A DNA stretch of 64,000 bases, from the NCBI GenBank assembly GCA_021613535.1, contig CP075496.1, positions 15,160,635-15,224,634 of the forward strand, written 5' to 3'. The notes beneath the pieces are model-generated. The model saw only the letters and a list, made by a program, of their open reading frames with translations. It was not told where the DNA came from and made no database searches. The stretch's first letter is position 1. The number at the start of each line of letters is the position of its first letter. Positions 45-63,740 of the stretch are shown one piece after another. This DNA is from Adineta vaga (Eukaryota; Animalia; Rotifera). The translations under genes were made by a program, and so were the position numbers.

Positions 45-2988
45 GTGTTCGAAAATTTAAACGAGTTTTACTTTTCAACAAAGGATTGTATATCTTCTGC
101 CAGTACAGATGGAACAGAAATTATCAATAAACTGGTTGAAATTAACGAGTTCGATGATGAAAATAGTCCGATAGATTCATCGGTAGTGAAAAATTTTCTT
201 AATAATCTCTCGGCTATTATTGATGCAGTAAATCATTTACAATCTAAGAAAAGTTCATTTTTATATCCTGGTAAGAAAAATAAATCCAGTTGTCGAGTTA
301 CTCTACCGTCATTTTTTCATAAAACAGCACTTACGGAACATTTGTTACTGATGGCTGATGATAATACAAATAGGTTTACCAAAGTTCCTTCGTCATTTTT
401 GGTCATTACATCTAGCTCCAGGATCGTACGAAGACACAAGTTATAAAAGATGTATTGAAATAGATTGTCCAAGTTCTGGTATGGCTTTATGCCACAACAG
501 AACACCATTATTCGCTCTAACCTTTTGTTCACAATTAATACAAAAGATATACATTCAATTAATAGATAGTGGTCAATGTATACTTGAAAAAGATGGTACA
601 TTCGATAGTAAAGAATGTATATATGAAGCTCAATTACTAATAGAATGCGTTCTTCAATTGCATAACTGTCTTTGTTGCAAATACACCATGACATATTTGC
701 TGATTCTCTTACATTATCTATTAAAAAGAAATCGATTGGAGAATTTCGCTGCCAGTTTCATCTGGACATTGAAATCTCACAATTTAAAGGAACATTATTA
801 TTCAACGATCAATAGAATATCTGATGATCAACCAGAAGAAGAAGAAAAAGAAGAACAAGAACAAGAACAAGAAAAAGTTTATAACGAAGTGAATATCATT
901 TCTGATACGATTAATTTTGAAATGGATCGTCTACAAGAAATTTTAAATCAATCTCATCGACATGATCAACATTTATACAGCAGTATTCTATCTCTTACTC
1001 ATATATGCTGGTTCACGTCTGATGTGCCATTAAAATGGCAATTATTCAAAACAGCTATTTAAGCGATGAATTTAATGTCCAATTCTATATTGAAAATACA
1101 TCTATTAAGTGTCATATTATCACATCCTTGTGTGACACCATTATTATCAACAGCGATTTTTCAAAGTCGAACATTGCAAGATGAATTTATAATGTCTATA
1201 AAACAATTATCATTCATTGAATCTCCTATGATTACATCGTTATTAATAGTACGTTGTTTTCCACATGCACACAATAATGACATTCGATCACAATTAGTTG
1301 ATATACTTTTTAAAAAATTTCATAATTTGAAAATATCCTCTTCTGAAGAAGCTGAAATCATTGGCGAAATTTTATCCACCTGTTCTGCGGCCAACCTTGA
1401 TCCATTATTTATTCAAGAGCAACAAAAACAATTGAGAATACGTAATATGAAATCTTGCATACATCTCAACAATCTCAATTCACCTATCAGCATACATTTT
1501 ACTCCTAGTCAACAGACAACATTAGCAGCGTACCATTTAGTTGAACTCGCTCATGATGTACAGAGACTAACATTTGGACAAAATATCTCAAGTTCGTCAG
1601 AACATTTATTAAATAGCGATGGAATTCTCACAGCATTACTAGCAACAAATATGACACAACAAATTCGATCAACCTCATTTGATCTAGAAAAAATCGATGA
1701 ACTACTTCAATCTTTCCAGGAGGTGACTCCTAATGCGGTACAGATTGTTCAAGAGTGGCTTTTATATGACAAAGATGAATAAAAAATACTGAGATATCAT
1801 GCTGCCCTTCTTCTATCCTATTCTAACATTTGGTCTGTCCTTGGTATAAATACTTTATGTGATATGTTATTGAGTAAACTCGACCGATTTCGACAACGAA
1901 CTGAATTTTTTATGCGAACACATACTATACCATGGCGGAGTTCGCAGCTTGGCTTAGATGTTTTTCTTGCACTAGCCGAAAAGCATTTCACTTTTGGAAC
2001 CATATCTCCTTATGCGTCGGTAGTAACATTTTTGGCATTTGAAAAACTTCAGATAGACGACATTGATCATCTTGTTGAATTGATGAAACGGGAAAAGCAT
2101 CAGATAGAAGCTGAACTAAAGGTATCAGAGAGTAAAGATAAGAATGTTCAGATGAATCAATCTTATATGAAAGTGCCACATACAGTTTCAACACCTGTTC
2201 TTTCTCATTTTATCAAAATGATCGAAAGTGAGATTGATGAAACAATGAAAGCAGAAACAGAAACATTGTCATCGGAAGCACAAGTACAATATATAGAACG
2301 TTTACTTAATGCGTCTATTTTTCACTGGACTACAGTGGGTACACAAGAAAGGATGTTTCTCGATATGGCTCAACGTATTTTAAATAATATTACAATCAAT
2401 GTCAGAATTCGTGCAATGATTGTATTTTCACTAGGTTATTGTAGCACTGGTGGTCTTCCTATTTTGCAAGCTGAAATTTTGAAGGTAGAATCTTTTGAAC
2501 TACTTCCGATTGCAGTTAGCTCCTACTGTTACTGTATCCGTAGAACCTATAACGCTCAAGACGATTCAGCAAGAACTATTATACAAAGCTCTTTAGAATC
2601 TATTATTAGTCTACTGAACCATTCTTCCGATGATGTTGCCCAAGCTGCAGCTGATGGATTAGCTAGTGTATATGCAGCATGGGATGATGGTTTAAGCGTT
2701 CTTCTAGATACTCTTCAGCATGATCATATTCGAGCATACACCGCTCTATTAAATGCAACAAAAGATTTGACAGACAATGCGATCAATCAAAAATGCGTAC
2801 ATCGAGCAGCTGAACTAATCGAACAATATTCATCATCTCTTCTACCACTTTTTCTTCTCGAATTATATCATAGTATCAAATATTTTCATACTTCAGTTCT
2901 TCTCATAAGATCACCGCCAGGATACCGAGGTATTAATGCAACTGTTGAAGTTGCAGCACTGCTTGTTCGAAAAATGCCTGCTGCTTGA
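45..2988 (+). pseudogene. Large helical (HEAT/ARM-like) protein gene, broken into 4 ORFs and cut at its 3' end by a telomeric hairpin
   Basis: Consecutive same-strand ORFs 45-446, 358-1062, 1066-1782 and 1864-2988 are separated by frameshifts or stops. The final stop is the TGA of TTGAGGGTGTGGG at 2985. The family is not recognised. Confidence 0.5.
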
Positions 2989-3056
2989 GGGTGTGGGTGT
3001 GGGTGGGTGTGGATGAGAGTTTGCTGATTAAAGATTAAGAACCCACACCCACCCTC
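2985..3056. repeat. Telomeric-repeat hairpin site 1
   Basis: TTGAGGGTGTGGGTGTGGGTGGGTGTGG-loop-ACCCACACCCACCCTC. Confidence 0.9.
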
Positions 3057-3341
3057 TCTTGTCTACGAGAAAGAAAATACTCTGTTGTCTCTCTTCCGTA
3101 GATATTGTTCGTTTAGTAGCATTCTAAACAGACAAAGACTATCAAAATACTAATGTGATGTAATTTGTAGCAGTTAATCAACTAGTTGTATTTTTCTCAG
3201 TTTCTACTCAGACTTTCGCTTGTATGTTCGAATGCTAACAAACATCTTCCGAAAAGTTGCAAGGAAACGCGGTTATTTGTGTCAAAACGGATATGACAGT
3301 AAAAAGTGTATTATAGAGAAATATAGAAATGGTTAGCCGTA

Positions 3342-3717
3342 AGTGGTCGACTGGAGGGAGGCCAACGAACGACCAGACGTGAATGTGTATAGTTACTAAT
3401 AAAATAAAGTTTAAAAGTAAAACCGAAGTACTCTAAATCGTTTTATCTGAAGACGTGGATTACTATTCTTTAGGAGTAACGCTGACGACGTACCACACTG
3501 TTAAGGCGAAAAAATTGAAAAGTATAAGGCATCCTGAACAATATTATAAAAGTATCGGATGCCTGAGAACCGTCTATTAATTACACTATAAAAGTCTGAT
3601 TTTTACTCGGATTAAGTTTCTTTTTTGACAAACGATAGAGAGTGATAAAAAGTGTATATTATGAACAGCTAGTCGTGAGTGGCCGACTGAAGGGAGGCCG
3701 ACGAACGACTAGCTGTT
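3342..3717 (+). repeat. Two copies of a GC-rich stem-loop motif (probable TE remnant)
   Basis: GTGGTCGACTGGAGGGAGGCCAACGAACGACCAG at ~3343 and GTGGCCGACTGAAGGGAGGCCGACGAACGACTAG at ~3679. The second is closed by the stem AACAGCTAGTCGT/ACGACTAGCTGTT. Confidence 0.55.
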
Positions 3718-5107: not shown

Positions 5108-5181
5108 ACCCTTCGCCACTACTTTTGGACTGCTCTAAGTACAATTTTGTTGGTTTCTCGAAAAGCGTGCAACAGTAGTCC

Positions 5182-5314
5182 ATCTTGAGGGTGTGGGTGT
5201 GGGTGAGAAACAGTGGAATGATGACACCCTCAACCATCCTCACCCACACCCAACCCCTTACCCTCATCCTCACCCATACCCACACCCTCACACCCTCACC
5301 CTTACCCTCAAGAT
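5182..5314. repeat. Telomeric-repeat hairpin site 2 (long variant C-arm)
   Basis: ATCTTGAGGGTGTGGGTGTGGGTGAG ... mixed CCCTCA/CCCACA/CCCATA/CCCTTA units ... CCCTCAAGAT. Confidence 0.9.
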
Positions 5315-6467
5315 AAATATGCTTGCTTTTTTCTTTTTTACTACCAATGAACAAAAGGTGCTCTTTATCAGCACAAATTAGTAAAAACTTTTTATAAAGA
5401 GTTGTTTCTTTTTTAACTGGGCATTTGTGATGACAATGAATAAATATCATTGAGAAAGACTTTTTTTTGCATAATTTTTAAGTTGTCGTCTTTACTTATC
5501 ATCAAGACCTAAATGTGCATTTGGATCGAGGTATAATAAACGTTAAGAAATAAAAAAAATTTGAAAAATTCAGATTTACATTTCTTTTAAATTTATAGTT
5601 CATATCTGATTTCATCTAAAAAACATTTCTTGCTAGAAACTGCATTTCCTTGAAAAACAAATGATTTTCATTGTAACTTTGTCAAAATAAGAACAGATGT
5701 TAACTGAAACGATCGATAAGAAAAAGTCAGAGCCAAATCATGAGCTTTTCATTCGTTAGAAGTGGCATGTAATAAAGAAATAATCCTAAAAGAATTTCCA
5801 TTGATTCTCTCAAGGATTTTAGATAAAAACCAATACAGATTGAGAAAATTTGCAATTTGGACCAGTTCTGATCTAGAAATCGACTATCATTGACATTTTC
5901 TATAAAATATGTGGAAGCAACGTATTCGATAAAAGTTGAGTTAAAACTGCACGTCTTTCACCATCCGGTTTTTATTTAGCTGATTTTGTTTCAATGAAGT
6001 TTGCTTCCGCACTCTACATGCGAGTCGCCCAGCATTGTTGCCAGATTGTCTGTTTATCTTGAACAATCATTTACATCTGCTTTCGTTATTTCACGAATTA
6101 ATTGTGTCTATGGATGTATTTTCATTGTTTTTATTTATCTATGATTATAGTATCGTGTTGATTGCGAATGTTCGAATAGAATCTATCGTATTAACGTGAC
6201 TATAACTAGTTTTTGTTCAGTTTTAAAGTATATACCATATATTCGAGTAAGTCAACGTGTGAGAAGAACGCTCGATGAGACTAATCATCAAGCAAACATA
6301 CAGAAGACATACGTGTCTAGTATGAGTTTTACCAATCTTTAGACACGGTCTGTATTCAAATAATCCTTACATGGTTATATTGTTTATAGGCGAATAGGAA
6401 AAAAACTACAATTAGATAATCTTCTCAGAAGATTTCGAGAAGCTTCCTCGCTGTTCATCTAACATGA

Positions 6468-16152: not shown

Positions 16153-16183
<31 letters not shown>

Positions 16184-27437: not shown

Positions 27438-27496
27438 TGAAGAGTGGGTGTGGGTGTGGGTGAAGAAAAGAGTAATACTCACACCCACACCCTTCA
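27438..27496. repeat. Telomeric-repeat hairpin site 4
   Basis: GAGTGGGTGTGGGTGTGGGTGAAG-loop-CTCACACCCACACCCTTCA; abuts the transposase break. Confidence 0.9.
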
Positions 27497-33414: not shown

Positions 33415-33442
33415 TGAGGGTGTGGGTGTGGGTGAGGGTGAG
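33415..33442. repeat. Telomeric tract site 5 (G-arm only), adjacent to a hammerhead
   Basis: TGAGGGTGTGGGTGTGGGTGAGGGTGAG. Confidence 0.85.
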
Positions 33443-33452
33443 TCAGAGCATC

Positions 33453-33496
33453 CCAAGACGCGTTTCGACTGTTGCTTAGGCAGTCTCATCAGTTGG
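33453..33496 (-). ncRNA. Minimal type I hammerhead ribozyme
   Basis: Minus strand: CCAA-CTGATGA-GACTG-CCTAAGCAA-CAGTC-GAAA-CGCGTC-TTGG. Perfect core, stems I and II, palindromic ACGCGT stem III. Confidence 0.9.
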
Positions 33497-33686
33497 TATA
33501 AATCAAATAACTTGAAAAACAGATTGACTTATTTTTAATCAAAGAAAAACAAGTTCAATCTGCTGGATTTCAACTTTTGCTTTTCAGCAATCGATATTTG
33601 TCGAATTATATAATAATAATAAATTTAATAACTTGAAAAATATTGTTAATGTGTTTATATTAATAAAAAATGTAGAATTTCACTTT

Positions 33687-33740
33687 GCCGACGCGTTTCG
33701 TGTTCGTTTATTTAGGAAATAAATTAACACTCTTCAGGGC
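33687..33740 (-). ncRNA. Minimal type I hammerhead ribozyme (second copy)
   Basis: Minus strand: GCC-CTGAAGA-GTGTT...TTTATTT..AAATAAA...AACAC-GAAA-CGCGTC-GGC. Confidence 0.85.
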
Positions 33741-34026
33741 TCTACATATTTTAAACACAGAAAGAAACTAGAGAAAAATATAGACAATAACAACGAAAAA
33801 TAAATGAAAGAAAGAAAGTAACTAAGCTTGAATAATAGAATAAATGCAAATATAATAAGTGCATGCGAATAAGAAAAAACAGAAGTAGAAAGGAATGAAA
33901 TTTGATAATATATGAATGATATTTAAAAATAAAGAAAAACATAGCATGATTGTGATAGATAATTAGTTGAATGTTATTGTTCAAGTATTATGAGTTTTAA
34001 CTAGACGTCGTTGAAGATTGTTAACA

Positions 34027-34094
34027 TGGGTGTGGGTGTGGGTGTGGGCTTCATTCCTCACCCACAGCCACGGTCACACCCACACCCGCAAGAT
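34027..34094. repeat. Telomeric-repeat hairpin site 6
   Basis: TGGGTGTGGGTGTGGGTGTGGG ... CACACCCACACCCGCAAGAT; coding-like sequence (RYNACP) starts right after it. Confidence 0.9.
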
Positions 34095-36247
34095 GCGTTA
34101 CAATGCTTGTCCAATATTTTTCTATGGTCCTCTTTTGGAAGCTTCTAAAGCAGCTTTTGATTCAAAAGATCTCAAAGAGGTTTATTTACATTCAATTTAT
34201 ATGAATATATTATTTTTTCTTACTTCACTATAGCATCGTCCAATCCTTGTCTACATACACAATGATAAGAGTATGTTGAATAACATATTTTGTAAAACGA
34301 CGCTTTGTGCAGAACTTATTATTGAGTATTTACAAGAAAACTACCTCGTTTGGCCATGGGATATAACTCTGCAATCAAATAGAAATCGATTGTTAACGAT
34401 TTGGAAAGAAATCTTTGTTTTTCCATTGTTAAGTGACTTTTCTGTAGATAAGTATCCTATGTTGTTTGGGATAACTCGTCGATTTCCAGTTAAGAAGTGT
34501 TGGTTACCTACAGTTCAATATGAGTTCACATCATTAGTTAAAGGTGATAAATTAATACGTACCCAAGAGACAATAACATTAAATGCTTTCTTGTCCGAAT
34601 TGATCGCATTCAAAGAAGAATGTGATTAAATCGAAAAAGCTTTGGTAAGTCTTTTCCTTAGCCTATCCGCAAAAAGTCCTGTTTTTCTCTGTAAAGATTC
34701 ACAATAGAGAAGAAGTAAATAGTGATCTTCAAATGGAGTCTTTTTTCCAATGTTTGGAAAAACGTTATCAAAATTGCCCGACATTCTTTACTGATTCACT
34801 TCAATATGGTTGTCAACTAACGCATAATTTGTCATTGAATAAAAAAGTTTGTTAAATACATATTCTATTACATCAAGATAAATTCTAACTCTCTTTCATT
34901 CTAGCGTCGTCCAGTGCTCATATTTGTACATGATGATAACAGTATACAAAATATAAATATCAATCCAATAGGTATTATTGATTATTTATTAGAAGATTTT
35001 AATGTCTGTCCATTCGACATCACTTCACAATCAGATCAACAAATGTAATAAAATGTTAGTTGATATGATAAATACCTTTCCTTGATTTATGTTATAGATT
35101 AAGGGTTATGTGGAATGAACTGTTCAATGCGCCTTTTCTTACAAAAGTTACCATTAGAAATTGTCCATTACTTTTTGGAGTAATGAGAATGTTTGATGAG
35201 ACAAATATTGATTCGAGCAAATCTAAATACCAAATCAAATTATTATTGGATAACGCTGTACGTACTCATAACACACTTATAGAACAGCTTCTTATTTTCA
35301 AACAAGAATGCAGTGCCAATGAAAAGGCTTTGGTGTGGATATTTATTCTTTATTAAAATATGATGGTTATGTTAAACATTTATTCGTCTGTTTTCCTTTA
35401 GGCTTGTGATTTTCTGAAGAATACTGGTTTTGATTGGCCGATTATTCTTGAAATCAGTCAATATTTAACATTAAATGATATGATCAACACGTTTTCGACG
35501 AAAATTATATCTGTATTATCAGAATTTCAGATCAAAGTTCATGTATCAGATCCATCTTATGCATTTATGAATATGATTAATCAAAAACTCCACCCTCGAC
35601 AAATTGCTTCTGTACAATTTAATACAGATTATCTCGAAAGAAGAAAAGATATACATTCTTGGCCGATTTTTCGCTGTGTTCAAAACTTAACATTTATTAA
35701 TCCTTCCGGTTCTCTTGACCTTGACAACTTTCCATATTATTTTCCCAGTTCGACAAATCTTTTGTTTCGATTCGATACAGAAGTCCAGTCTAATTCCTTC
35801 GATAATATACTGCATCGATTTCCAAGTACAATTACACGATTAACAATCACTACTACTGTACCTGTAGAGTTTTGTCGTTCTCAAACAACTCCAAATACTA
35901 CGATTGAATATTTTCGATTGGATATTAGTCGCCTTGTGTCATGTCCAATGGATCCGAGTATGAATTCGTATATTTCAGAACTGTTATTGGCATCAGTAGA
36001 ATTCATCTCTAAATTGCCTAATGTTCATTCGGTTTATTTCATAGTTAACAAACTTATTATTGAGAGATTGTTAGATATAAAACGCTGGGTATATGTAGTA
36101 GAGAAATGTTCTCAATTGAAGAAGGTGACAATGAAGGTTTCAGGAGATATGTCGCCGAACAATCCATTAACACAGACGAAATTACAAATACAAGAAGCTC
36201 TCTCAACTAGTCGACAAGAATTTCAATTTCAAGTTATATTTTCGTAA
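34095..36247 (+). pseudogene. 5'-truncated gene with duplicated UAS (FAF1-like thioredoxin-fold) modules and an F-box/LRR-like C-terminus
   Basis: RY..CP.F..GPL.EA...AF / RPILVYIHND....NIFC...LC....IEYL.ENYLVWPWDIT module appears twice, with short introns. Premature TAA at 34627. Confidence 0.6.
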
Positions 36248-36665: not shown

Positions 36666-36727
36666 TTGAAGGGTGTGGGTGTGGTGTGAGTCAGGCTATA
36701 TTCTCAGCCCATACCCACCCTCAAGAT
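36666..36727. repeat. Telomeric-repeat hairpin site 7
   Basis: TTGAAGGGTGTGGGTGTGG ... CCCATACCCACCCTCAAGAT. Confidence 0.9.
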
Positions 36728-36861: not shown

Positions 36862-36910
36862 TGAGGGTGGGTGTGGGTGTGATTATTCCCATGTTTCTCA
36901 CCCACACCCT
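36862..36910. repeat. Telomeric-repeat hairpin site 8
   Basis: TGAGGGTGGGTGTGGGTGTGA ... CTCACCCACACCCT. Confidence 0.9.
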
Positions 36911-37764: not shown

Positions 37765-37970
37765 TGTTGACCGTTGCAATACACCAGGTATGTGATGCTA
37801 ATATAATATTTCAATCATATTTTATTATACTAAACTAATTCTTTATATTTTCATTGTAGACAACATCATATAAATAAACATTTAAACTGGAAAAAACATC
37901 TATTCTTATCAATATCAAGTATTATTATAATCATTGCACACTATCGATCAGTTTCTTTTCTCTTTTATTA

Positions 37971-38052
37971 TTGAGGGTGTGGGTGTGAGTAACAGAGACA
38001 CCCACACTCACTCACCCACACCCACACCCACAACCACCCACACCCTACAAGA
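37971..38052. repeat. Telomeric-repeat hairpin site 9
   Basis: TTGAGGGTGTGGGTGTGAG ... (CACCCA)n CACCCTACAAGA. Confidence 0.9.
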
Positions 38053-38353
38053 GATATAAAGAAATTAGTAAAACAATATCGCTATTGGTTAACAACCGGC
38101 GTCTTTATTAAAAATGAAATTTCTCAAACATTTTTTGTATTCATTAACAAAATTCGATCTTCAATCAATATTTTTAATTGTTCTATTCTAAAACATTATT
38201 TTCCATTACTAATTCTTTAAATTGTAATAAATATTTCACGAACTGAAGAGAATGTAGCATTTATTTTTTGCTACATAATTGAATTTTTCATATGTGTATT
38301 GGCAATATCAGATCCTTTTATGAAAGATGATCTAAAAGAAAGCGTTGAAGTGT

Positions 38354-38417
38354 TTGAGGATGAGAGTGTGAGTATTGGAGACGAATAGATGGCCACACCC
38401 ACCCACACCCTCAAGAT
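38354..38417. repeat. Telomeric-repeat hairpin site 10
   Basis: TTGAGGATGAGAGTGTGAG ... CCACACCCACCCACACCCTCAAGAT. Confidence 0.85.
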
Positions 38418-38739
38418 GGTTGCCGTTCTTGAACCGATGGAACCAATATTGTGCTGTACGAGCGGGCACTGCATCCTTGCCCATCGTGCTGCATATTTTG
38501 TTCGTTGCTTCCGTTGCTTTACGACCCAAATGGAATTAGTGAAGCAGAAGCACTCTTAGCTCTCGTCGAGATATATTTATTTCTACTTCGAGATCGACGT
38601 CCATATTCTTGATTTTGTTATCATTCGGAAGACACTCATACTCCCTTTATATACTTTTAATATGGAACTTTCTAGAACTTTCTCGACTGTTGTAGGAAAT
38701 TCCGAAAAAAAACGCAAAAAATTTCTTACCAACCTAATA
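38418..38739 (-). mobile_element. mariner 5' fragment (TIR plus HTH), truncated by hairpin site 10
   Basis: TIR TATTAGGTTGGTAAGAAA; HTH F.LGRKATEATNKIC.TMG....RTAQYWFHRFKNGN. Confidence 0.8.
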
Positions 38740-39382: not shown

Positions 39383-39950
39383 TCTCGTGATGCCTGCTTT
39401 TGATAGATGTTGTAGTAGTCAACGGTAACTAGAGGTTGTTTGGTTTGTTTTAAGGATGAATGCAAAAGATCAGCCTTTAAATAGGACGAGGCCGAGGAAT
39501 TAAAAAAGAAACAAGTGTTGCGTTGCCTTCTACTGATAATAGTAAGCACCTTCTTTTTTGATGACAACGCAAGTTGGCAAGTATGGACTTCTTGTTGAAA
39601 AAATCCGAGAGAAACTTATCTTTACTGTGTTTCCAAGATGATGCGAGATGACCTTCTAAAGATGATTTTTTCACTTCTATTTTCACCGGAAAAAATTGGA
39701 AGGAAAAAGGAAAAAAAACCATGAGAAAGATTTTAATTCTAATCTTTAAAGGAGATATTTTTTGTATCATTGTTGTGCAGCACACATAAGAACGATAAAG
39801 TTATCTCCAACAACTGGAAAAAAAGAAAAAAGTGAGTGATATATCCTTAAACAACTGAAACGGCCACAAGACCGTTTTTCCCGCCCTGTATCCTGTCGCC
39901 TCTCATCCAGCCCTGTCCTGTGACCTGTCTCAAAAAAAACTTTCTCGCCC

Positions 39951-40017
39951 ATCTTGAGGGTGTGGGTGTGAAGAGTATGTCTTTCCATTACCAACATCCA
40001 CATCCACCCCATCTCAA
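39951..40017. repeat. Telomeric-repeat hairpin site 11
   Basis: ATCTTGAGGGTGTGGGTGTGAAG ... CATCCACATCCACCCCATCTCAA. Confidence 0.85.
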
Positions 40018-40220
40018 TCGCAGAGTTCAATTTTGTTTGATATCTCTTTTCTATACCAAAATTTGTCAATTGAGTTTAATATTAAATACGAAGAAACTTT
40101 ATTGATTAATCATTTTCTATGTTGCTTTTCATATCTGAATATATTTGTATATGAAGATCTATACCATTTTTTGAATAAATGAATCACATTGAGATGAGAA
40201 GATTCATCTTTTATTGAACA

Positions 40221-40266
40221 AAGGTGTGGGATAAGTGTTCGTGCCTTTCTCTCACCCATACCCTTT
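40221..40266. repeat. Telomeric-repeat hairpin site 12 (short)
   Basis: AAGGTGTGGGAT ... CTCACCCATACCCTTT. Confidence 0.65.
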
Positions 40267-41828: not shown

Positions 41829-41853
41829 TCTTGAGGGATGTGGGTGTGGGTGT
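41829..41853. repeat. Telomeric tract site 13 (G-arm only)
   Basis: TCTTGAGGGATGTGGGTGTGGGTGT fused to LTA4H codons FNQFL. Confidence 0.85.
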
Positions 41854-42179
41854 TTACATATTAGAAAGTTGTTACAATATATACTTCATTTTTCCTTATA
41901 GACTAAAAAATCTGTCTGAACTATCTTTGAAATATTAGTAAATATTTTACTAAATCTTTTTCGAAGCTAGAATAGAAACACTCTGTGTAATACCTGTTAT
42001 GGGGAAAACAACCAAACAGTCTTTTGATAATTTTAACGTTGTCTTCACATTAAAATAAGAAGAACGAGTTATGTAGATTATTCACAGTAAAGAGGGAATA
42101 TCTATTTTTCTTTTTCTATCATTTGTATTTGGCACATACATACTTATAAGTTGTTTAATCAAATACATTCATAATTAAA

Positions 42180-42819
42180 ATGGCTTCAATGTTTCCAACG
42201 CATGTTGCTTCAAATATAGCTAATGAAAATCCAGTTACTTCGTGGATTCGTTTAAAATACGAAGATCGTCTCGACAAAACAATGAAATACTATACATCAA
42301 AGATGGTAATTGTTCAAATAATAGTTGCATGTGCTTTCTCAATCTCGGAACTTTATTGGGGTATGAGTTATCCAAATCAATGTCCAATCGAACCTGCAAT
42401 TATTAAATTTCTTATTGCTCATGGCGCTACAAAATTTGCATGGATCTTCTTGACTATTCTTGCGATTGTTGACGCTAGATTAATTTATAAAGTGATGAAT
42501 AAAAAGAGTCTAGCACGTCGACTTATACTTATAAATCTTGCATTTTAGTCTCTTTTTGCCGTATGGTTTTTTTTCATGGTTTATTGCCGGCAATATTTGG
42601 GTTTTGTGTAATAAAAGTCGTTATCAATCTAAAGATCCAACAAATACAAGTACGTATTGTTATGAAGATTTATATCAAGCAGCAGTTTTGCTGATTATTA
42701 TGACATATGCTGGCTTTGGAATCACTCTGATTGGAACAGTTAATCGCCGCTTTATTAGTAAAAAAATTAAATATGCAATGAATAAAAAATGTAAGCGTGA
42801 AATAAATGAATTAAGTTAA
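42180..42819 (+). pseudogene. Four-TM membrane protein with a frameshift at ~42545
   Basis: Two overlapping ORFs give 4 hydrophobic helices with Y..QCPIEP.I and WFIAGNIWV...YC...LY motifs. Confidence 0.6.
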
Positions 42820-43113
42820 TAATACAATAATTAATAAACTTTAAAAAAATAATTGGCTAACAATAGAAGTTTGAAGAGAAAAGAATAGATGTTGTGTCGT
42901 TGATTTGTCTACTTTGATTAATTAAATAAAAATTGATTGAATTTATTTATTTTGTCAAAAAAAACATATTTGTTGATTTGACAATCTTCTGGTTTTGTCA
43001 TTTCCGAAAATATGAATAAGAAAAATGAAAAATGTTTATTAGTAGAGATTTTAAAGTAAAATCAAGTATATTTACTTATTTTATTCAACTAATATTAGTA
43101 TCATCAAATTTGA

Positions 43114-43208
43114 TTAAACCATGTTCCAGTGGGAAATGACAACGTTTTTTTGCTGTTTGCACATAAAAAGTTAGTTGATACATATGTAATTGAATTGTCT
43201 GTAAAGAT
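43114..43208 (-). pseudogene. ~95-bp fragment of an ART-gene paralogue
   Basis: Clearly similar to 44997-45091 (LQ.IQLHI.QL..YVQTAKK.CHFP.EHGL); ends at hairpin site 14. Confidence 0.75.
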
Positions 43209-43302
43209 AGGTGTGGGTGTGGGTGGTCCTTACTGGATCGTTATCGACATCTTCATCCATACGCATACTCTCACCCACACCCACCTACACCCACACCCTC
43301 AA
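43209..43302. repeat. Telomeric-repeat hairpin site 14
   Basis: AGGTGTGGGTGTGGGTGG ... CTCACCCACACCCACCTACACCCACACCCTCAA. Confidence 0.9.
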
Positions 43303-43465
43303 ATAAACTATTTATCTTTTGTTTAAATTAATCATAGAAAAGAATCACTCAGCGTACTGAAAAAAAAAGAAGAGACTGATTTCCAAAAGTCCGAAACACT
43401 TACGTATTCTCTAGAATTTCGTTTTTTATTTGCATCTTAAATAGGAAAAAATGTAAAAAAGGTTT

Positions 43466-45180
43466 TTATTCCAAAATTAAATCAAATCTTGCGATTCGAT
43501 GATTCCAACAATCAGCAACATAAAGATTTCCTTCAACATCAAATGATAAACCACTGGGACAATTCAATTTATTTAATTCTTCTCCTTCTCCATTTCCACC
43601 AACAATAATTTCACCTTCTTCTTTTCCTTCGCACCAACGCACTATTCGATTGTTATTACAATCTGCAACATAAACTTGACCTATATGATCGACAACTATT
43701 CCATAAGGACAAGACAGTTGATTGAGGTTATTTCCTTCATCATTTCCACCAGCAACAATAATTCCTTCTTTTGCATCTTTTCTCCATTTCATTACACGCT
43801 CATTCAAACAATCCGAAACATAAATCGATTGTTCATCATCAATAAAGATAAAAGTAGGACCATTCAATTGATTAAGTTGATTTCCTTTTCCATTTCCACC
43901 AGCGACTACTTGTCCTTCTTTTTCTCCAATTTTCCATCTTCTCACTTCATTCTTTTGTTCATCACAAATATAAAGAAATCCAAATTTATCTTTTGTAAAA
44001 CCATGACACGAAATATTTTCAATGATAATTTCTTGTTGATTTTGATTCAACCATCGAATCACTCGTCTGTTCCCTTGATCAGCAATAATCAGTGAATTAC
44101 TTTGTTCATCAATAATCACATTTATTGGTCCATCCAATTGATCAATTCTTTCTCCTTTTCCATTTCCACCTGCAATAATTTTTCCTTTCTTTCCATTTGA
44201 TTTCCATTCAATAATTCGATCATTGCCCAAATCAGCAATAAAAATATTTTGCTTTTTTGTCAATATAAATTCCTTCAGGGCTCCAGAGTTGATTTAATTA
44301 ATTCCCTTCCATCTTCATTTTCTCCTGCAACAATTGTTGCATGTTGTTTCCATTTGTTGAATTGAATTTCTTCGAAAGGAAAAAAAAGCAGTTTTGTTGT
44401 GATTCACATTGAAATTTCAAAATTTATTCAATAAAATTTCTACTTACTCCTCTCTTTTAGAATTGTTCTCGTTAGTAAATTATTCATTGCAGATGTTATA
44501 GTGTGCTGTTGCTCTTTTTCATCATTAATTTCCACCAGATGAACATGAAATGAATCTTTTGGATGTTCTAAAACATTACCTTGAACACGAAAATCAGTTC
44601 CCATTTTTAAAATGACTTCATCTTCTTGTTCTGGATCAGTATAACCTGAGATTTTCTTTCCACTTGATGTTTCAATGAGAAATATTGTTGAATTTATTTC
44701 ATTTCCAAGAAAATGTTTGATCACATGAACTGAAGATGAACAAGAATTGACACTCCACCATGTTAATTGTTGATTTTTAGAGAAATTTTTTCCAATATCA
44801 TTTGAAACACCACGCCAAACATTTTCTCGAACAGGTGGTAATTTGTCCAAAGCAGAATCAAATAATTTCAAATAAGAAAACCAAATTGTCAAAGCATCTC
44901 GATTTTCATCACGTAAAACTTTGTTTAAAACTCGATATAAACTTGTTTCACCCCATTCCATTGTATAAATGTAGATGGAAGCAGATTCATCACGTGTTAA
45001 ACCATGTTCTGATGGAAAATGACACCATTTTTTTGCTGTTTGCACATATAAAGGTAGTTGATGAATGTGTAATTGAATTGGTTGTAAAGATTCTTCAAGT
45101 GAAACAAGTTTTGCACTTCGATAACCAAAGATAGCTGGAAGTCTTTTTAAAGAACAATCAATATCACCAAAACGATTCAT
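43466..45180 (-). CDS. Mono-ADP-ribosyltransferase (R-S-E class) fused to NHL repeats; frameshifts near 44250-44305
   Basis: ART motifs VWRGV, SCSS and EQEDEV. Intron ~44370-44447. Five to six NHL repeats (VAGGNG.G..LNQL.GP...YVAD..N.RI). Confidence 0.85.
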
Positions 45181-45284
45181 TACTTTTGATTTTCTTCTTA
45201 GTTTGGAAATAAAAATCAGTTTATTTAAATTTGTGAAAATCTTTTCGATATTTTATCTAAAGAGAAATTAAATTGAAAACTTTG

Positions 45285-45335
45285 TGAGAGTGTGGGTGTG
45301 AAAGAAGAAGAGATACATCCACACCCATACCCTAA
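45285..45335. repeat. Telomeric-repeat hairpin site 15
   Basis: TGAGAGTGTGGGTGTGAAAGAAGAAG ... CATCCACACCCATACCCTAA. Confidence 0.85.
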
Positions 45336-48275: not shown

Positions 48276-48312
48276 TCTTGAGGGTGTGGGTGTGGGTGTG
48301 GGTGTGGGTGAG
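48276..48312. repeat. Telomeric tract site 17 (G-arm only, ~5 perfect units)
   Basis: TCTTGAGGGTGTGGGTGTGGGTGTGGGTGTGGGTGAG. Confidence 0.9.
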
Positions 48313-55224: not shown

Positions 55225-55281
55225 TTAAGGGTGTGGCTGTGGATGAAGAAGAATATCCAGCCACACCCACATCCTCGAGAT
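55225..55281. repeat. Telomeric-repeat hairpin site 19
   Basis: TTAAGGGTGTGGCTGTGGATGAAGAAG ... CAGCCACACCCACATCCTCGAGAT. Confidence 0.85.
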
Positions 55282-55809
55282 TTCGAGTAGAATTGGTAAA
55301 ATAAGGCACAAACCTCAGATTATCTAATTATCTATTGTAATGCTCGCTTAAAAGTGTGGTTTTTGTCGCATGTATCATATATCCTCACCGAAAGTACACC
55401 TTCACACAAAATTCTTTCTTCCATATGTTTATTTTCTACTATATCTTGTATAAAATTTATTGTCGAGTGAGATATAACTAGAGCTTTATTACATTGCAAT
55501 CGTTTTATCATACTGAAATAAAACTCTCAAGTCATATCTCTACTAGACAATAAATTTTATACAAAGTATGATACCAAAGAAACAAAGAGGGAAAATATTT
55601 CTGTTCGTAGGTGTATCTCATATTTGGATTCATTTTTCTATAAAAAATTGTTTTTCAAAAGAGTTCAAGATATATGACACTGGTTTGGTGCTACCTATAG
55701 ATTGCTATCATCTATATCTGGTTGTGACAATTTTTTTCCCCATTCTTTGTGCATTAAAAGTCATCAAAACTCAAGTAAGAAAAGAATTAAAAATCAGAGA
55801 AAAATCTTT

Positions 55810-55869
55810 AAAGGATGGATGTGGGTGTGAGTAAAGAAGAGGTACCTTGACTAACATCCACACCCTCAA
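55810..55869. repeat. Telomeric-repeat hairpin site 20
   Basis: AAGGATGGATGTGGGTGTGAG ... CATCCACACCCTCAA. Confidence 0.8.
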
Positions 55870-58226: not shown

Positions 58227-58297
58227 ACACCCTCACCCACACCCACACCCACACCCTTCTGTATATAATATAGAGAAGATGTTGAGGATGAGGGTGA
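58227..58297. repeat. Telomeric site 21 with arms in reverse order (C-arm, then G-arm)
   Basis: ACACCCTCACCCACACCCACACCCACACCCTT-~23 nt-TTGAGGATGAGGGTGA. Confidence 0.8.
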
Positions 58298-58934
58298 TTG
58301 TTCGCTTTGTACAGTTCTTACAATTACTATCATTACCAAATTTTCCAGGATGGGTACTTAGATTTAGAGAACATCAACATGGCATACTTGGGCGTTTGTT
58401 AACGCTATCGAAGTTTCCAATAAGGTTGGCATATCTGAAATAGAATTGAATTCCAAAGGTGTTTCAGTTCTACAGATATTCCTATTTACACTTTCTTTGA
58501 TTCTCTAACACAGCTCAATAAACTTTACCTGTTTCGAAGATGAATTGTTTTCTTTTTTGTTAAATTTCAATCAAAGAATGAGTCAACGTTAGAATATTTT
58601 CTGTGGTTAAAAGCTCTGTTTTTGTATGAATTTTCAATTTCGATGTGCGTAAGCAAAGAAACCTACGCAAGTAATTAATTCGTCTGCGACTACAATGCAT
58701 TAAAATGCCAGAAACAATTTTTTCGAATTACTCATTTAAAAAAAACGAATTCATGACTTTCCATTTATGGTTAAGGATCTGGGCAAAAAATGCATTATAA
58801 GCATTCAATGACTCATGACAAAAGAAAAATGTTTAATTCCAAGTGGTATATAAACATTGACGAAAACAAATGCAGTACTATATCATTATAATTTCTTTTT
58901 CTCTTATTCATACATATTATTTAGTTTTTAATAA

Positions 58935-61544
58935 ATGGAATTTCAAAAGTGTCGATACAATGATAAAATTGTAGAGATACCTGTTCGATATGTAAAAAAG
59001 AATAAATATTTATTCTTACAAGATGTTCATGATTATTTTATTGGTATTCGAAGATTTACAATTGACGAAGAGCTAATAGAATTCGAACAAGACAACAATA
59101 ATCAACTAATTTATCCACAACGAATTCCAGCTTCAACTCGATATGTAATCGATTGTCATACATCAATGTCTTCAGACAGTGCTATCTCATCAGAACGCAA
59201 CGTTTTAAATACAGTTGTAGATAATATTGAAATTCTTAAAACAAAACTCGATGTTATTCAACGTCAAATATATGAAACAGCAGAATACACCATACCCCAT
59301 CTTTTCATTGTATTACCGGTTGAAACACCTTCTTACAATCCTTCAAAATGGCTTCATTATAAATATCGTTTGCATTTTCTATGCGATTGTGCAAACGACA
59401 ATGAACGCCATTTTGCTCTTCATGATGGATATGAAATAAAGGAACCACGTGAATTCTTTCAGAAATATGGACCTTATCTTCGTAAGACGTTAACTGTAAT
59501 TAAATATATGGCATCCGTCGGAAGCATCGCTGTTCCACAACTATCATCGATCTTTACGAAATTACACAATATTAATATTTTACAAAAAAAGGAATTTTGG
59601 GATAATATTATTCATAAAGTAGAACAAACAGATGAGATTTTGGCGAAAGCTCAAACAAATATAAATATTTCAACCGAAAGAAATATTCAAGAAGGAAACG
59701 GTCCTGCATTACGGCAAATTCGAAAATATTTGAAAAAAGTAGATGAAAATGATACATTAGGAAATTTATACCGTACTGTTACATCTAATGGACAAGTTCG
59801 ATGGGTATGTATTGATCATTATAATAAACAACATTCAACTAATCGAATTAAACAATTCCGAAATGAATTTGAACGATTAGGTGGAAAAATAGAAGATAAT
59901 ATTGTTATCATAGATAAATTAAATGAAAAAGTTTTCTCAGAAATCAACAAATTATTAAATCAAGGTTTAACAATCGATACTATAAGTATCAAAGATGTCA
60001 AAATAACAGAAGATCTATTTTCAAAATTTCTCAATATTATTTCAAGAAAAATTAGAATTAATAAACTTAAATTAGAAAACATTTTCCTGACAAATTTTAG
60101 AATAAAAACTTCGAAACAAAAAATCATTTCAATGCTTAATGATGCATTAGAAAGCAATCGTCAACTTATCATTGAATATACATTTACAAAATTAATGGAC
60201 AAATTTCAATCAAAATTTTTCGATACTATTAAAGAAACAAATTCGCGATTGAAATTCACCATTCAACCAGAAGAAATAGAATCTTCATTTAAATTATTTG
60301 GAACAAATGAAACTGGATTTGTTCTATCTTTAGAAAGTATTGACGAAAAAAGTATTAAAAATATCTTTCAACAATTGAACATATCAACACTTCATTTACA
60401 GAATGCAGATCTTTCCGACAATCTATGGAATACTATTCTTACTTTCGCTATTAACAGTCGAACTCTCGAAGAAATTACTATAGATTATAATGTAATACCA
60501 GTTACAACTCAAAAACAGATATTTCATCTTTGTGAAAATAGAAATTTAAAAACATTACATATGAAGAATGTACAAATGGGTGTCTGTGAAAAAATCTTTC
60601 GAATGTTAAAAAATCAAAATACTTTGGAAACATTTTCTTTGACATCATCTACTTATTATCTTGAAATAGATTTTAGTTCTATATTATCAGAAAATGATCA
60701 ATCAATGTTCAGTTCATCTGTTAAATGGCATACTAATGAAAATAATAATATGAAAATTATTACAAATCTTCTTCAAATCATTCCAGTTCAACAATTGACA
60801 TTGGAATTAGTGCATACTGATTGTGATACATCACTTAAACAATTAGCAGAAACTATTAATCAACTATCATCATTAAAAATTCTAGAACTTAAAAACAAAA
60901 TTGGTTATGCAATTTTTTATCAAGAAAAACGAATTTTTAGAACAAGAAGTAATGTACTTAAACCACAGTTACTCCCTGCACAAGTTAAGAAACCTTCTCT
61001 GCGCAAAAGACTGAGAAAATCTCTATTGTTTCTTAGTTGTATTAGTCCTAAACGTTCCCATTCTTCTCAAATAGAAACTACTGAACCCGTACAGTCTCTT
61101 AGAGAAATCGAAGTATCTGATCAATCTTTCTCTCAAAGTTTCTCACATCCACTTTACAAACATATACAAGAAATTGCATTAAACTTTACATTAAAACAAT
61201 TACAAATCAATATTAATCGTGATATAAATATAAGTCATCTTGTTTCGGATATACAATCAAATTCAACAGTATCTCATCTACGATTTGCTGGACAAATACG
61301 AGAAAATGATATGACAACATTAATTAAAGCTGTTCGTAAAAATACGATAATATCTCATTTATCTTTGAGAGAAATTGAGATTTCATTTACTAATCTTCGG
61401 CAAATCTTTGATGTATTCTATGATAATCAAAACTTAAACGTATTAGAAATTCATCCTTGTACATCGGATACTGATCGAGAGTTATTTCAACAAGAAATTA
61501 ATAAGGCACGCTCTGAAAATCGTACTTTGCAAGTTTTATTTTGA
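58935..61544 (+). CDS. 869-aa intronless protein: COR/Roco-associated-like domain plus RNI-like LRR region
   Basis: PHLFIVLP, YRLHFLCDC, HDGYEIKEPREFFQKYGPYL and LGNLYRTVTSNGQVRWVCIDHY, followed by degenerate LRRs. Confidence 0.7.
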   Translation: MEFQKCRYNDKIVEIPVRYVKKNKYLFLQDVHDYFIGIRRFTIDEELIEFEQDNNNQLIYPQRIPASTRYVIDCHTSMSSDSAISSERNVLNTVVDNIEILKTKLDVIQRQIYETAEYTIPHLFIVLPVETPSYNPSKWLHYKYRLHFLCDCANDNERHFALHDGYEIKEPREFFQKYGPYLRKTLTVIKYMASVGSIAVPQLSSIFTKLHNINILQKKEFWDNIIHKVEQTDEILAKAQTNINISTERNIQEGNGPALRQIRKYLKKVDENDTLGNLYRTVTSNGQVRWVCIDHYNKQHSTNRIKQFRNEFERLGGKIEDNIVIIDKLNEKVFSEINKLLNQGLTIDTISIKDVKITEDLFSKFLNIISRKIRINKLKLENIFLTNFRIKTSKQKIISMLNDALESNRQLIIEYTFTKLMDKFQSKFFDTIKETNSRLKFTIQPEEIESSFKLFGTNETGFVLSLESIDEKSIKNIFQQLNISTLHLQNADLSDNLWNTILTFAINSRTLEEITIDYNVIPVTTQKQIFHLCENRNLKTLHMKNVQMGVCEKIFRMLKNQNTLETFSLTSSTYYLEIDFSSILSENDQSMFSSSVKWHTNENNNMKIITNLLQIIPVQQLTLELVHTDCDTSLKQLAETINQLSSLKILELKNKIGYAIFYQEKRIFRTRSNVLKPQLLPAQVKKPSLRKRLRKSLLFLSCISPKRSHSSQIETTEPVQSLREIEVSDQSFSQSFSHPLYKHIQEIALNFTLKQLQININRDINISHLVSDIQSNSTVSHLRFAGQIRENDMTTLIKAVRKNTIISHLSLREIEISFTNLRQIFDVFYDNQNLNVLEIHPCTSDTDRELFQQEINKARSENRTLQVLF

Positions 61545-62029: not shown

Positions 62030-62335
62030 GTAATAACATGTTTATCAATCCAATCAAGTACATTCTCCAGAACCTCTTCTCATTTTAAATCATTATGCAA
62101 TTCATGCATATGATTTGGGCAATTCTTGAATGTTACATCATCACCTTTAACTCGATTTGTAACCCATTGTCGAATAGTTTCAATGGGCGTAACTGTATCA
62201 TCAATACCATGTTGAATCAACACTAGAACTGGAAAATGCAAAACAGTTGTTTCTAATGAATAACCTGTTTCAAGAAATAAAGAAATAGTGCGTGCTCGCC
62301 ATCTATCGTGCCCTAGTGGATCTTCACGATAAGCT
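62030..62335 (-). pseudogene. 3' fragment of an alpha/beta hydrolase (monoacylglycerol lipase/lysophospholipase)
   Basis: AYREDPL, PVLVLIQHGIDDTVTP, HELHND; 5' part replaced by hairpin site 22. Confidence 0.8.
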
Positions 62336-62380
62336 TTGAGGGTGTGGGTGTGATTCAAGTAGAAATACACTCACACCCTT
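62336..62380. repeat. Telomeric-repeat hairpin site 22
   Basis: TTGAGGGTGTGGGTGTGA ... ACACTCACACCCTT. Confidence 0.9.
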
Positions 62381-62624
62381 TATACTAAAACCAAAGTTAA
62401 GACGTACGATACTCGTTAAAGGAGTAACGGTTTTCTCTCGCTACTTGTAAGCGTACCTTCATCCTCATCTATATTAATGCAGAACAGTAGATAGTAGTGA
62501 CTTCTTTGAAATATTCTATTTGAAAGTCATACTGTTTGTTAATTCAAAAACAATTCAGAAATATATAAATTATTTTATCAATGTTCTTTGATGCGTTCTC
62601 TTTAGGTAAATTGTATCTCTTGTT

Positions 62625-63740
62625 TTAACGACTGATAAATGTACCAAGAATAAACGCTATTAATCCAAGTATAATATACCACGGTGATACTGAACGAATA
62701 ATATTTCTCGACATCGACTTTTCTATCGCTGACTGCTGAACTGGTCTATGTAGTGATCGTGAGGGCGTTAATGGATCACCAAGAGCTTTCAAACGACTAT
62801 AAATTGCATTTACAACATTATTATCATCCTCGTTTGAAATATCCATATAACCATCAATACTTTTGCCATCAACTGATAATAACATAATTCGGTCAAAAGA
62901 AAGAATTGATAAACATAGTTTTATTAATTCTTTACGTGAATAATCATCACACATAAAGACAACAATCAATCTTGTTTGATATCGATAGATTGTATGTAAA
63001 TAAAGATCTAAATTTGGACGAGCTAATTCTGCTTTACGATATTTATCATAAAAAATTCGTTCTCTTCCATTTTGTCCATTGATTTTTTCACAAAGTTTTT
63101 CTGCTATGCTGCAAACTCGTTCACGTATATCACCTAGAAAGTAAAGAAATAATTCTTTTTTTAAAGTAAATATTTCCATAATTAAATATTAAACCTGGAA
63201 ATGAAAATGCAACATCAAATCGATGTGCATATTTATCGATAAAATATGCATCAAGTAATTGTCCAAATCGATCAAAATCTTTTTTCTTTTGATCAGATGT
63301 CAAATTGTTTGTATAATAAACTCTATAACGTTCATAATTCTAAAATTAATTCAAATATAATGATGAAAGATTTTAACTTCACTCTTAAGATGATTTTACT
63401 TTTAATTTAAATTTAAATATTTTTGCAAGAGCTACACCAACTTTAGGGTGGGTGTGGGTGCTCATATCTTCCATTACCCATACTCATCCTCAAGATGATT
63501 TACCTATTATTCTATTATCACCGGTTGCATTTGTACTAGTTTGTTCATTTGTCAAATTTTCGCTAATTATGTCATCAGTTAATGATATCGATTGAGAAAG
63601 TGGAGTATTTTCTAAAGATAAAGGCAAAAGAATTAATTGAAAAATAATTCTTTATATTTACCTTCTAGCGACGACGACATACTTCAATAAATCATTGATA
63701 TATTACCTTTCCTATCTAAGAAAATCTTTTTAAAATTTAT
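62625..63740 (-). CDS. TIR (TIR_2, bacterial-like) domain protein with C-terminal TM; multi-exon, 5' end uncertain
   Basis: RFDVAFSFP|GDIRERV..IAEKL...IFYD...ELARPNLDLYL..IY......VVF...Y..KE; intron ~63135-63194; C-terminal hydrophobic helix. Confidence 0.7.
63443..63496. repeat. Telomeric-repeat hairpin site 23 (apparently inside a TIR-gene intron)
   Basis: TTAGGGTGGGTGTGGGTG ... CCCATACTCATCCTCAAGAT; on the minus strand it follows a GTAAAT donor. Confidence 0.85.

Follow-up and report, generated by a model that had tools for sequence, protein, structure and literature searches.

Head-to-head telomere repeats join truncated segments at an end of chromosome 4 of Adineta vaga, a bdelloid rotifer

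How does the end of an animal chromosome come to consist of gene fragments separated by short inverted telomere repeats? The question is raised by the final 64 kb of chromosome 4 (C4) of Adineta vaga (C4:15160635-15224634), referred to throughout as the window; its end coincides with the contig end, at position 15,224,634 of a 15.2-Mb contig, and its final 30 kb are a patchwork of gene fragments joined by such repeats. A sequence-only reading of the window had offered two origins for the repeat sites: broken fragments capped with short telomeres and fused end to end, or attC-like recombination sites or mini-elements that assemble gene cassettes. The first origin is largely supported here, by arms that lie at truncations, by a junction at 2989 that joins in a piece of chromosome 2, and by a genome-wide ratio of 372:2 for arms that face each other. 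On balance we favour the reading that the sites are joints of two DNA ends, each given a short new telomere seed, joined head to head and later spread by recombination between repeats.

Head-to-head telomere repeats in the window

The genome searched comprised 100.8 Mb in 6 contigs (written C1, C2 and so on, by chromosome); in the published six-chromosome A. vaga genome, AV20, (TGTGGG)n is found at every scaffold end (PMC8494291). Within the window, the telomere 13-mer GGGTGTGGGTGTG was matched 42 times with at most 1 mismatch, against 0.01 expected, and the exact pattern GGGTGTGGG-N10-40-CCCACACCC was matched 8 times, against 0 expected. Reading of all sites with their flanks resolved about 17 hairpins, each made of a G-arm, a spacer of 10-45 nt and a C-arm; they begin at 2989, 5189, 27446, 34028, 36671, 36869, 37975, 38353, 39958, 40222, 43209, 45288, 54676, 55229, 55817, 62340 and 63450, and one arm is decayed in 4 of the 17. 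Clear single G-arms stand at 33418, 41833 and 48282, and two further sites, 18314 and 46927, are doubtful or weak, the latter being partly missing from a 92% paralog. The earlier count of 18 hairpins, 4 single arms and 1 reversed site was close to this tally of about 17 hairpins, 3 G-arms, 1 C-arm and 2 doubtful sites. The site that had been called reversed, at 58228, is a single C-arm with five repeats and a weak G-like patch downstream.

The two arms have an almost strict polarity. Genome-wide, the G-then-C pattern GGGTGTGGGTG-N4-34-CACCCACACCC gave 372 matches, against 3 in the control, whereas the reverse order, C-then-G, gave 2; a count over about 250 kb of A. vaga sequence returned 27 G-x-C arrangements and 0 each of G-x-G and C-x-G. 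The G strand runs towards the joint from both sides (372:2), and the G-arm-then-C-arm polarity described from the window holds throughout the genome. As single strands, the window hairpins fold far better than shuffled sequences (z -2.3 to -6.1). In the genome scan for inverted arms that the sequence-only reading had proposed as a check, the sites concentrate in the distal megabases of chromosome arms, as judged from the match lists. Arm-like matches per 10 kb of the window number 0-8 upstream and 12, 8, 6 and 3 in the last four 10-kb bins, and within this chromosome end the sites are densest in the final 30 kb. The + strand is taken as the G strand running to the chromosome end, because the hammerhead and C-rich tail of an Athena element lie on the - strand at 33418-33498. 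No target-site duplication was found at any window site inspected, as had been remarked for the sites checked earlier.

Junctions of this kind could be produced by chimeric assembly of telomere-containing reads. Contigs from runs of three other studies (2013, 2015 and 2022) matched 39400-40198, 41741-43163 and 41741-43305 with 0 mismatches, and these independent contigs traverse the 39958 hairpin, the 41833 G-arm and the 43209 hairpin (to 43298), the first two each in contigs of two runs. Five sites (55229, 55817, 58228, 62340 and 63450) recur in a 97%-identical 8.6-kb block on another chromosome, C5:175670-184297, and the same architecture is present in environmental contigs. Apparent 'joints' in the comparison with read contigs had sides of 20 nt and differing spacers; these are other genomic hairpins that match the arms. 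No point favouring assembly chimeras was found; for the junctions tested this explanation is refuted, and overall it retains practically no probability. The lack of read support that had been named as damaging to the sequence-only reading is thus not what was seen, independent read assemblies spanning three junctions.

Truncated segments and the nested leader

The sites are listed below in window coordinates, after the three spacer families to which most spacers belong.

Spacer family A: GTGAGTGAAGAAGATATAC
Spacer family B: GTTAGATAGATGTAGTAC
Spacer family C: GAGTCAGACTATACTCTTAA
2981..3054: hairpin; leader ctgcTTGA, G-arm 2989-3012, 28-nt spacer, C-arm 3041-3054
5181..5315: hairpin; full leader CATCTTGA, G-arm 5189-5205; on the right a long degenerate C-arm region to ~5308 and an outer leader copy TCAAGAT
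27446..27492: hairpin; family-A spacer GAAGAAAAGAGTAATAC; z -6.1
33418..34027, - strand: Athena/Terminon-type 3' end, 5'-truncated; hammerhead ribozyme 33451-33498; its C-rich 3' tail on - is the G-arm 33418-33440 on +
34028..34095: hairpin; G-arm caps the truncated Athena, spacer CTTCATTCCT, C-arm to 34087, then 8 nt GCAAGATG
36671..36727: hairpin; family-C spacer GAGTCAGGCTATATTCTCAG, decayed C-arm, outer leader copy TCAAGAT
36863..36909: hairpin; homology to C3:17.69 Mb begins exactly at the G-arm, left flanks unrelated
37967..38052: hairpin; long C-arm; left segment cut short relative to the C3:17.69 Mb paralog, which runs on here without repeats
38353..38419: hairpin; decayed G-arm, C-arm 38400-38410, outer leader copy TCAAGATGG
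39950..40025: hairpin; full leader CATCTTGA, G-arm 39958-39970, decayed C-arm
40222..40263: hairpin; decayed G-arm
41833..41852, + strand: single G-arm directly after host ...CAATTTCTT; truncates the M1-peptidase gene
41853..43208: unique 1356-bp segment between this G-arm and the next hairpin, at the place of a 448-bp deletion
43209..43301: hairpin; C-arm directly next to ...AATAAAC, which in the C3 and C1 paralogs comes after the 448 bp lost here
45284..45332: hairpin; family-A spacer; common to the window and the C3 paralog
48278..48310, + strand: single G-arm with five repeats; right end of the block common to C3
54676..54725: hairpin; decayed G-arm, family-B spacer ATAGATCGGTGTAGTAC
55229..55274: hairpin; family A; identical in the C5:175670-184297 paralog (97%)
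55817..55865: hairpin; family A; identical in the C5 paralog
58228..58256, - strand: single C-arm with five repeats; also in C5; weak G-like patch at ~58283-58298, 30 nt downstream
62336..62378: hairpin; family A; also in the C5 copy
63446..63496: hairpin; family A reversed, outer leader copy TCAAGATG; also in C5

Wherever an arm was compared with paralogs, it stood at a point where a gene or segment is cut short; its two flanks are unrelated, except in one case in which a 448-bp deletion lies between them. Set against an uninterrupted copy, the repeats begin exactly at break points 41832, 43299, 34096, C1:12728 and -46889. The clearest case is that of the M1 peptidase, whose paralogs on C3 and C1 extend 448 bp beyond the window break ...CAATTTCTT/GAGGGATGTGGGTGTGGGTG at 41832; the paralogous sequence resumes in the window at 43299, directly after the C-arm of the 43209 hairpin, and the gap is filled by 1356 bp of unique DNA bounded by the 41833 G-arm and that hairpin. 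This site is a break with loss of 448 bp, at which telomere repeats were built outward on both sides and extra DNA was caught between them. At the 34028 hairpin, homology to a FAF1-like paralog at C3:15.19 Mb starts only at 34096; the paralog continues leftwards with its own coding sequence, whereas the window copy is cut at 34096, and the hairpin has a truncated Athena as its left flank. A receptor-like gene copy is cut in the same manner at a hairpin at -46889, upstream of the window.

The 2989 junction joins a truncated gene to an inverted subtelomeric piece of chromosome 2: the segment from 3056, to the right of the hairpin, is an inverted paralog of C2:15.938 Mb, and the native piece ends, 355 bp further out, in a tract of five telomere repeats towards the C2 end. 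An open reading frame (ORF) of 401 codons at 1783-2985 (+) stops in the TGA of this hairpin's leader; it had no Pfam match at E 0.01 or better. Elsewhere paralogs differ in the hairpin itself. In C1 the 45288 hairpin and the adjoining 140 bp are replaced by ...GTCTTTT/GAAGGGTGTGGG, a new G-arm, and about 200 bp of other DNA, and the 77% paralog of the 27446 region, at C3:19.08 Mb, carries instead a hairpin of family C, placed at another distance.

Contiguous flanks with a target-site duplication in a homologous copy, which would have spoken for simple insertion, did not appear in the paralog comparisons, none of which showed a simple insertion with duplication. The peptidase site is the only one with both flanks together in paralogs, and there a 448-bp deletion and 1.36 kb of extra DNA take the place of a contiguous empty site. 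A look-up of allele-level empty sites through exact proteins had nothing on record. These comparisons bear on the idea that the hairpins are miniature inverted-repeat or foldback DNA transposons with telomere-like terminal inverted repeats, inserted by a transposase. Inverted repeats, a conserved outer motif, short length, hundreds of copies and recurrent internal sequences would all suit such elements; against this, target-site duplications are absent and the outer ends vary, all paralog comparisons gave unrelated or truncated flanks, paralog homology starts inside the arms, and single arms head Athena copies and long telomere arrays. We regard a transposon origin as quite improbable.

The segments themselves bear on the second origin proposed from the sequence, in which a site-specific recombinase would use the hairpins, as attC-like sites, to put gene cassettes together. 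Pfam scans, which took in most window ORFs of at least 100 aa, identified between the sites pieces of FAF1, M1 peptidase, NHL, ADP-ribosyltransferase (ART), carboxyl methyltransferase, P450, Sel1/TPR/HEPN and leucine-rich repeat (LRR) genes in mixed orientation; the matches are host-type or foreign-type gene fragments, with no integrase or recombinase domain and no reverse transcriptase among them. The likeness to attC sites is outward only, in that imperfect palindromes separate segments of gene size. Instead of complete, co-oriented cassettes, most of these segments are genes cut short and lying in mixed orientation; the arms are the telomere repeat of the species and head Athena copies, and boundaries shift between paralogs. 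With ragged outer ends, no target-site duplication and no recombinase context, this part of the earlier proposal is not supported, and we accord it scarcely any probability.

Each arm begins with a nested leader, (C)ATCTTGA or in full (C)CATCTTGA, followed by TGAGGG and then by TGTGGG repeats. Among 76 non-redundant arms, the bases preceding the first GGG were A in 49, GA in 24, TGA in 21 and TTGA in 17, and the longer forms were CTTGA in 8, TCTTGA in 6, ATCTTGA in 4 and CATCTTGA in 3; the conditional frequencies of the nested series, 0.5-0.9, lie far above base composition (background 0.17-0.35). The exact sequence CACCCACACCCTCAAGATG, a 19-mer that includes the 8-nt leader, was counted 207 times across the genome and 0 times in the control. 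The outer hairpin ends are therefore not fixed, the leader being a nested, progressively shortened series. Of the consensus first drawn up from the window, the inverted arms are real; its outer 'TCTTGA' turns out to be the inner part of the longer, truncated leader (C)CATCTTGA, and its variable loop gives way to spacers that mostly fall into three recurrent families.

At one break the origin of the leader can be read directly. The 8 nt CATCTTGC at 34088-34095 are absent from the FAF1-like paralog, and since homology starts only at 34096 they were added and are not host sequence. Three further breaks have GAGGG immediately after host TT or TCTT, and the added part begins at GAGGG. The host bases at the three breaks and the non-repeat nucleotides at 34088-34095 are marks expected of telomerase-mediated healing, by microhomology with the template or by templated addition at the junction. 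A nested leader is the expected trace of a polymerase copying an RNA ...CCCACACCCUCAAGAUG..., provided that the position at which the DNA end pairs with the template varies, and the pattern resembles telomere seeding de novo on an RNA template. The leader is also found in environmental sequence: 15 low-GC environmental metagenome contigs share leader and arm, some with family-A hairpins; among arms that the query had not selected, 3 of 9 carry CTTGA. In some of these contigs long irregular G arrays follow the leader, and in two the leader and a G tract are followed by an antisense Athena hammerhead. Because it also heads long irregular arrays, the leader marks the start of telomere-type synthesis in general and not a fixed cassette.

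In two environmental contigs (L019 and L027) the flanks outside the hairpin are inverted repeats as well (ACCAAGTGACATGG ... CCATGTCACTTGGT), unlike any A. vaga site read, and these may represent a larger foldback element or a snap-back product. Snap-back synthesis giving long palindromes was rejected for the hairpins generally, as flanks beyond the leader are not inverted copies, this one contig pair excepted.

One arm belongs to an Athena/Terminon element. A full-length match to the type I hammerhead model (Rfam RF00163) lies at 33451-33498 (-), with an E of 0.0012 but under the gathering score; at the gathering threshold the whole window had no Rfam match. On the - strand the hammerhead is followed by CACCCTCACCCACACCCACACCC, which is the known layout of the Athena/Terminon 3' end, and this combination of hammerhead and reverse-complement telomere repeats was found in the window only at 33418-34027. 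Such 3' ends attach to G overhangs (PMC6431247). Arms also form the edges of larger duplications. Paralog homology starts exactly at G-arms, with different DNA to the left, at 36869 (against C3:17.69 Mb) and at 39958 (against C1 and C3); the 39950..40025 hairpin is the left edge of a block common to C1:17.17 Mb and C3:17.54 Mb, and all its left flanks differ. On the right the block stops at the 48282 G-arm; within 10 nt of this point C3 carries a G-arm of its own, beyond which its DNA is different. The C3 copy has also lost the 270 bp that separate the 39958 and 40222 hairpins, and its joint lies inside the two spacers. To judge from these alignments, block boundaries at G-arms fit the copying of sequence between chromosome ends, with priming inside the telomere repeats; for an A. 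vaga telomere, break-induced replication has been proposed earlier (PMC2861651).

Spacer families and the formation of the joints

Genome-wide spacer classes rest on reading by eye of the C1 matches to GGGTGTGGGTG-N4-34-CACCCACACCC; about four fifths of the C1 spacers read belong to families A, B and C, in either orientation. Spacers of the same family sit between unrelated flanks, and two C1 hairpins 2 kb apart share an identical 28-nt spacer while their arms and flanks differ. Clear family spacers were found only between two arms, and arms around one and the same spacer range from 11 nt to >100 nt. Joint sequences are thus not idiosyncratic to each event, as fusion scars would be, but recur as families. 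The 62340 hairpin differs from its C5 copy at ~15% of positions, against ~3% for the flanking 8.6 kb, which suggests either that another family-A hairpin served as donor in gene conversion or that the palindrome mutates at a raised rate. Because families recur with unrelated flanks and the 62340 hairpin has diverged, the joint appears to be copied from a pool of templates, and hairpins appear to exchange sequence.

Several sources for the spacers were considered and set aside. Run-off copying of hammerhead-cleaved Athena tails was suggested by family C, whose spacer resembles the antisense tail of the window's Athena in its start, GAGTCAGA, and stops at the point homologous to that element's hammerhead cleavage site. 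Upstream of family A/B cores a hammerhead was matched once genome-wide, against 1 in the control, and 27 spacers aligned to 18 hammerhead tails with best scores of 14.44, against 14.45 for shuffled spacers; the idea was kept as possible for family C only. A hairpin-free master copy of family A, as a candidate telomerase RNA, was sought and not found, the best matches all having G-arm-like sequence upstream. Spacers often begin GTGAGT and the outer motif ends AG, as in a spliceable 'introner'; no RNA-type contig crosses or splices a hairpin, the sole apparent skip, of 53 nt, is also present in DNA runs, and the hairpins lie between truncated genes, not inside continuous frames.

Starting from the observed truncations, added leader, polarity, spacer families and paralog boundaries at G-arms, we infer the acting enzyme, the identity of the template and the order of events as follows. 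The starting point would be a double-strand break, the end of a chromosome or a loose linear fragment, whose 3' end would be extended by an RNA-templated polymerase, most likely telomerase, with the Athena reverse transcriptase as the alternative. Synthesis would begin in the stretch adjoining the repeat template, giving the leader (C)ATCTTGA, shorter when the end already pairs with the template, and would continue with one TGAGGG unit and then one to four TGTGGG units. Two seeded ends would be joined head to head, producing a G-arm followed by a C-arm on either strand. The 10-25 nt of spacer between them would be copied from a small template pool rather than being random filler, the template being either RNA adjoining the repeat template or an existing hairpin that acts as a bridge in synthesis-dependent annealing. 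Repeated cycles of this kind at the end of chromosome 4, in which Athena elements also became attached and other subtelomeres were copied by a break-induced process with its priming in telomere repeats, would have built the terminal patchwork.

Several points weigh against this account. No telomerase RNA gene was identified, so that the source of the leader is itself conjectural, and the missing master copy of family A counts in the same direction. None of the window events was seen as polymorphic in reads; all are old. Only one site has a paralog that shows both flanks to have been adjacent once. In many cases the arms are one and the same 13 nt, a uniformity greater than eroding telomeres would lead one to expect. 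Finally, since family spacers are always two-armed and G-x-G is absent, the hairpin may be made as one unit and not from two ends.

The last point leads to the strongest competing explanation, in which each hairpin would be a retro-cassette complete in itself: a short RNA hairpin running from leader through G-arm, spacer and C-arm to leader again, transcribed from existing copies or from an Athena-type 3' tail, would be copied in a single step onto a broken end by Athena reverse transcriptase or telomerase, and the product would bridge to the other end, the arms being part of the template. The three spacer families with unrelated flanks, the identical spacers with different flanks, the family spacers never seen without both arms, the absence of G-x-G arrangements, the arms that are often exactly GGGTGTGGGTGTG and the resemblance of family C, from its GAGTCAGA start to its end at the cleavage-homologous position, to the antisense tail of the window's Athena are all as this model would have them. 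It accounts poorly for outer ends that are both ragged and independently truncated, for arm variants that are not mirrored between the two arms, for arm lengths of 11 nt to >100 nt around the same spacer, and for a leader that also heads long irregular arrays and single arms; the A/B cores have no hammerhead upstream, and spacers match hammerhead tails no better than shuffled ones do (14.44 against 14.45). We consider it unlikely, though a good deal less so than the transposon or cassette-site explanations. The favoured reading of separately seeded and joined ends could, taken further, mean that bdelloids have a regular RNA-templated end-bridging pathway, in which telomerase or the telomerase-like Athena enzyme seeds free ends with leader and repeats and a templated spacer bridges two seeded ends; we regard this as less likely than not. 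Such a pathway may also act on the ends of excised transposons and foreign DNA.

Genes in the segments, significance and known systems

Segments bounded by arms include foreign-type genes. An intact ORF of 869 aa (58935-61544, +) occupies the segment between the 58228 C-arm and the 62340 G-arm. It has no Pfam match, and within Adineta a protein search for relatives gave only the chromosome 5 paralog (96% identical) and A. steineri relatives at no more than 58% identity; beyond that genus the best matches are with LRR/F-box-like proteins from fungi of the Mortierellomycete group (25-38% identity), and it is likely a foreign gene, because these relatives are fungal. A GH19 chitinase ORF (29685-30383) is found upstream of the 33418 G-arm, in the stretch that separates this arm from the 27446 hairpin. 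The ART (ART/exoenzyme-type) ORF at 44443-45252 (-) adjoins the NHL-repeat ORF at 43469-44293 (-); both appear to be transcribed, since contigs of a probable RNA run cover them, and one such contig ends at 43301, just short of the hairpin. The 540-bp inter-hairpin segment at 55280-55797 consists almost wholly of a dispersed repeat with copies at C3:5.61 Mb, C5:2.48 Mb and C5:14.37 Mb (internal) and contains an inverted repeat of its own at 55395-55615; perhaps this is a small transposon trapped between a pair of capped ends.

Bdelloids live through massive breakage of their chromosomes and, among animals, have the largest known load of foreign genes, concentrated near chromosome ends; the hairpins bear on how these ends are protected, rejoined and loaded with new DNA. 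They are a base-pair record of hundreds of past end-joinings, with the place of the break, the first addition and the partner, and they are recombination-prone palindromes that set the boundaries of segmental duplications between subtelomeres. If the end-bridging proposal is true, they would be the footprint of the patching of desiccation-broken chromosomes and of the entry of foreign genes into subtelomeres, and leader and spacers would read out the bdelloid telomerase RNA around its template. The constant leader makes a direct, testable prediction of that RNA, with a template flank ...CCCUCAAGAUG and the form 5'-...[reverse complement of spacer A or B]-CACCCACACCC-UCAAGAUG...-3'.

Parallels exist in other eukaryotes. 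In yeast, Kramer and Haber reportedly found in 1993 that de novo telomere addition starts with a selected subset of TG1-3 sequence, set by pairing of the end on the telomerase RNA template; new yeast telomeres likewise begin with a reproducible sequence but, unlike the sites described here, are terminal, with no head-to-head rejoining and no non-repeat leader. The ciliate transposons TBE and Tec carry telomere repeats as inverted ends, together with a transposase, fixed termini and a target duplication of 3 bp, features that were not seen at the A. vaga hairpins.

Closest in organism and compartment are the Athena/Terminon elements, endonuclease-deficient Penelope-like elements with a 3' hammerhead and (ACACCC)n tail, whose 5'-truncated copies are telomere-capped and form chains with captured host genes (PMC6431247); one such 3' end is that at 33418-34027. 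Interstitial telomere repeats and these chains are published (PMC6431247, PMC2861651). Athena attachment and capping do not explain a C-arm directly after a G-arm, because the repeats would then lie in one orientation only; moreover, most window segments are without Athena sequence, and only the family-C spacer resembles an Athena tail. In mutation-accumulation and irradiated lines of A. vaga, telomere repeats and Athena fragments occur at deletion breakpoints and the neotelomere 'scars' are read as transient protection of broken ends (PMC13564844); the evidence there is clipped reads at few breakpoints, and the accessible portion of that report has no description of the inverted-arm architecture, the leader or the spacer families. 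The earlier phrase 'undescribed eukaryotic gene-shuffling system' was too strong, given these related phenomena. The architecture itself, with rule-like head-to-head hairpins, a nested leader on both sides, spacer families and arms as duplication boundaries, appears to be undescribed, being without description in the literature searched, although a 2007 PNAS and a 2017 MBE report may hold one.

A likeness in mechanism exists with the vertebrate interstitial telomeric sequences (ITS), including those with retrotranscribed telomerase RNA (TERC-ITS; Sola et al. 2021, PMC8537989), which are likewise short repeat tracts at repaired breaks, with deletions or additions in the flanks. There 3 of 41 loci are head to head, an arrangement explained there by a second telomerase at work on the opposite side of the break (PMC8537989), and some inserts contain telomerase RNA sequence, a homology that for the A. 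vaga leader is conjectural. In A. vaga, by comparison, head to head is the rule (372:2), hundreds of sites occur in a 100-Mb genome and are mainly subtelomeric, flanks are usually unrelated, and a constant leader stands outside both arms of joints whose spacers fall into families.

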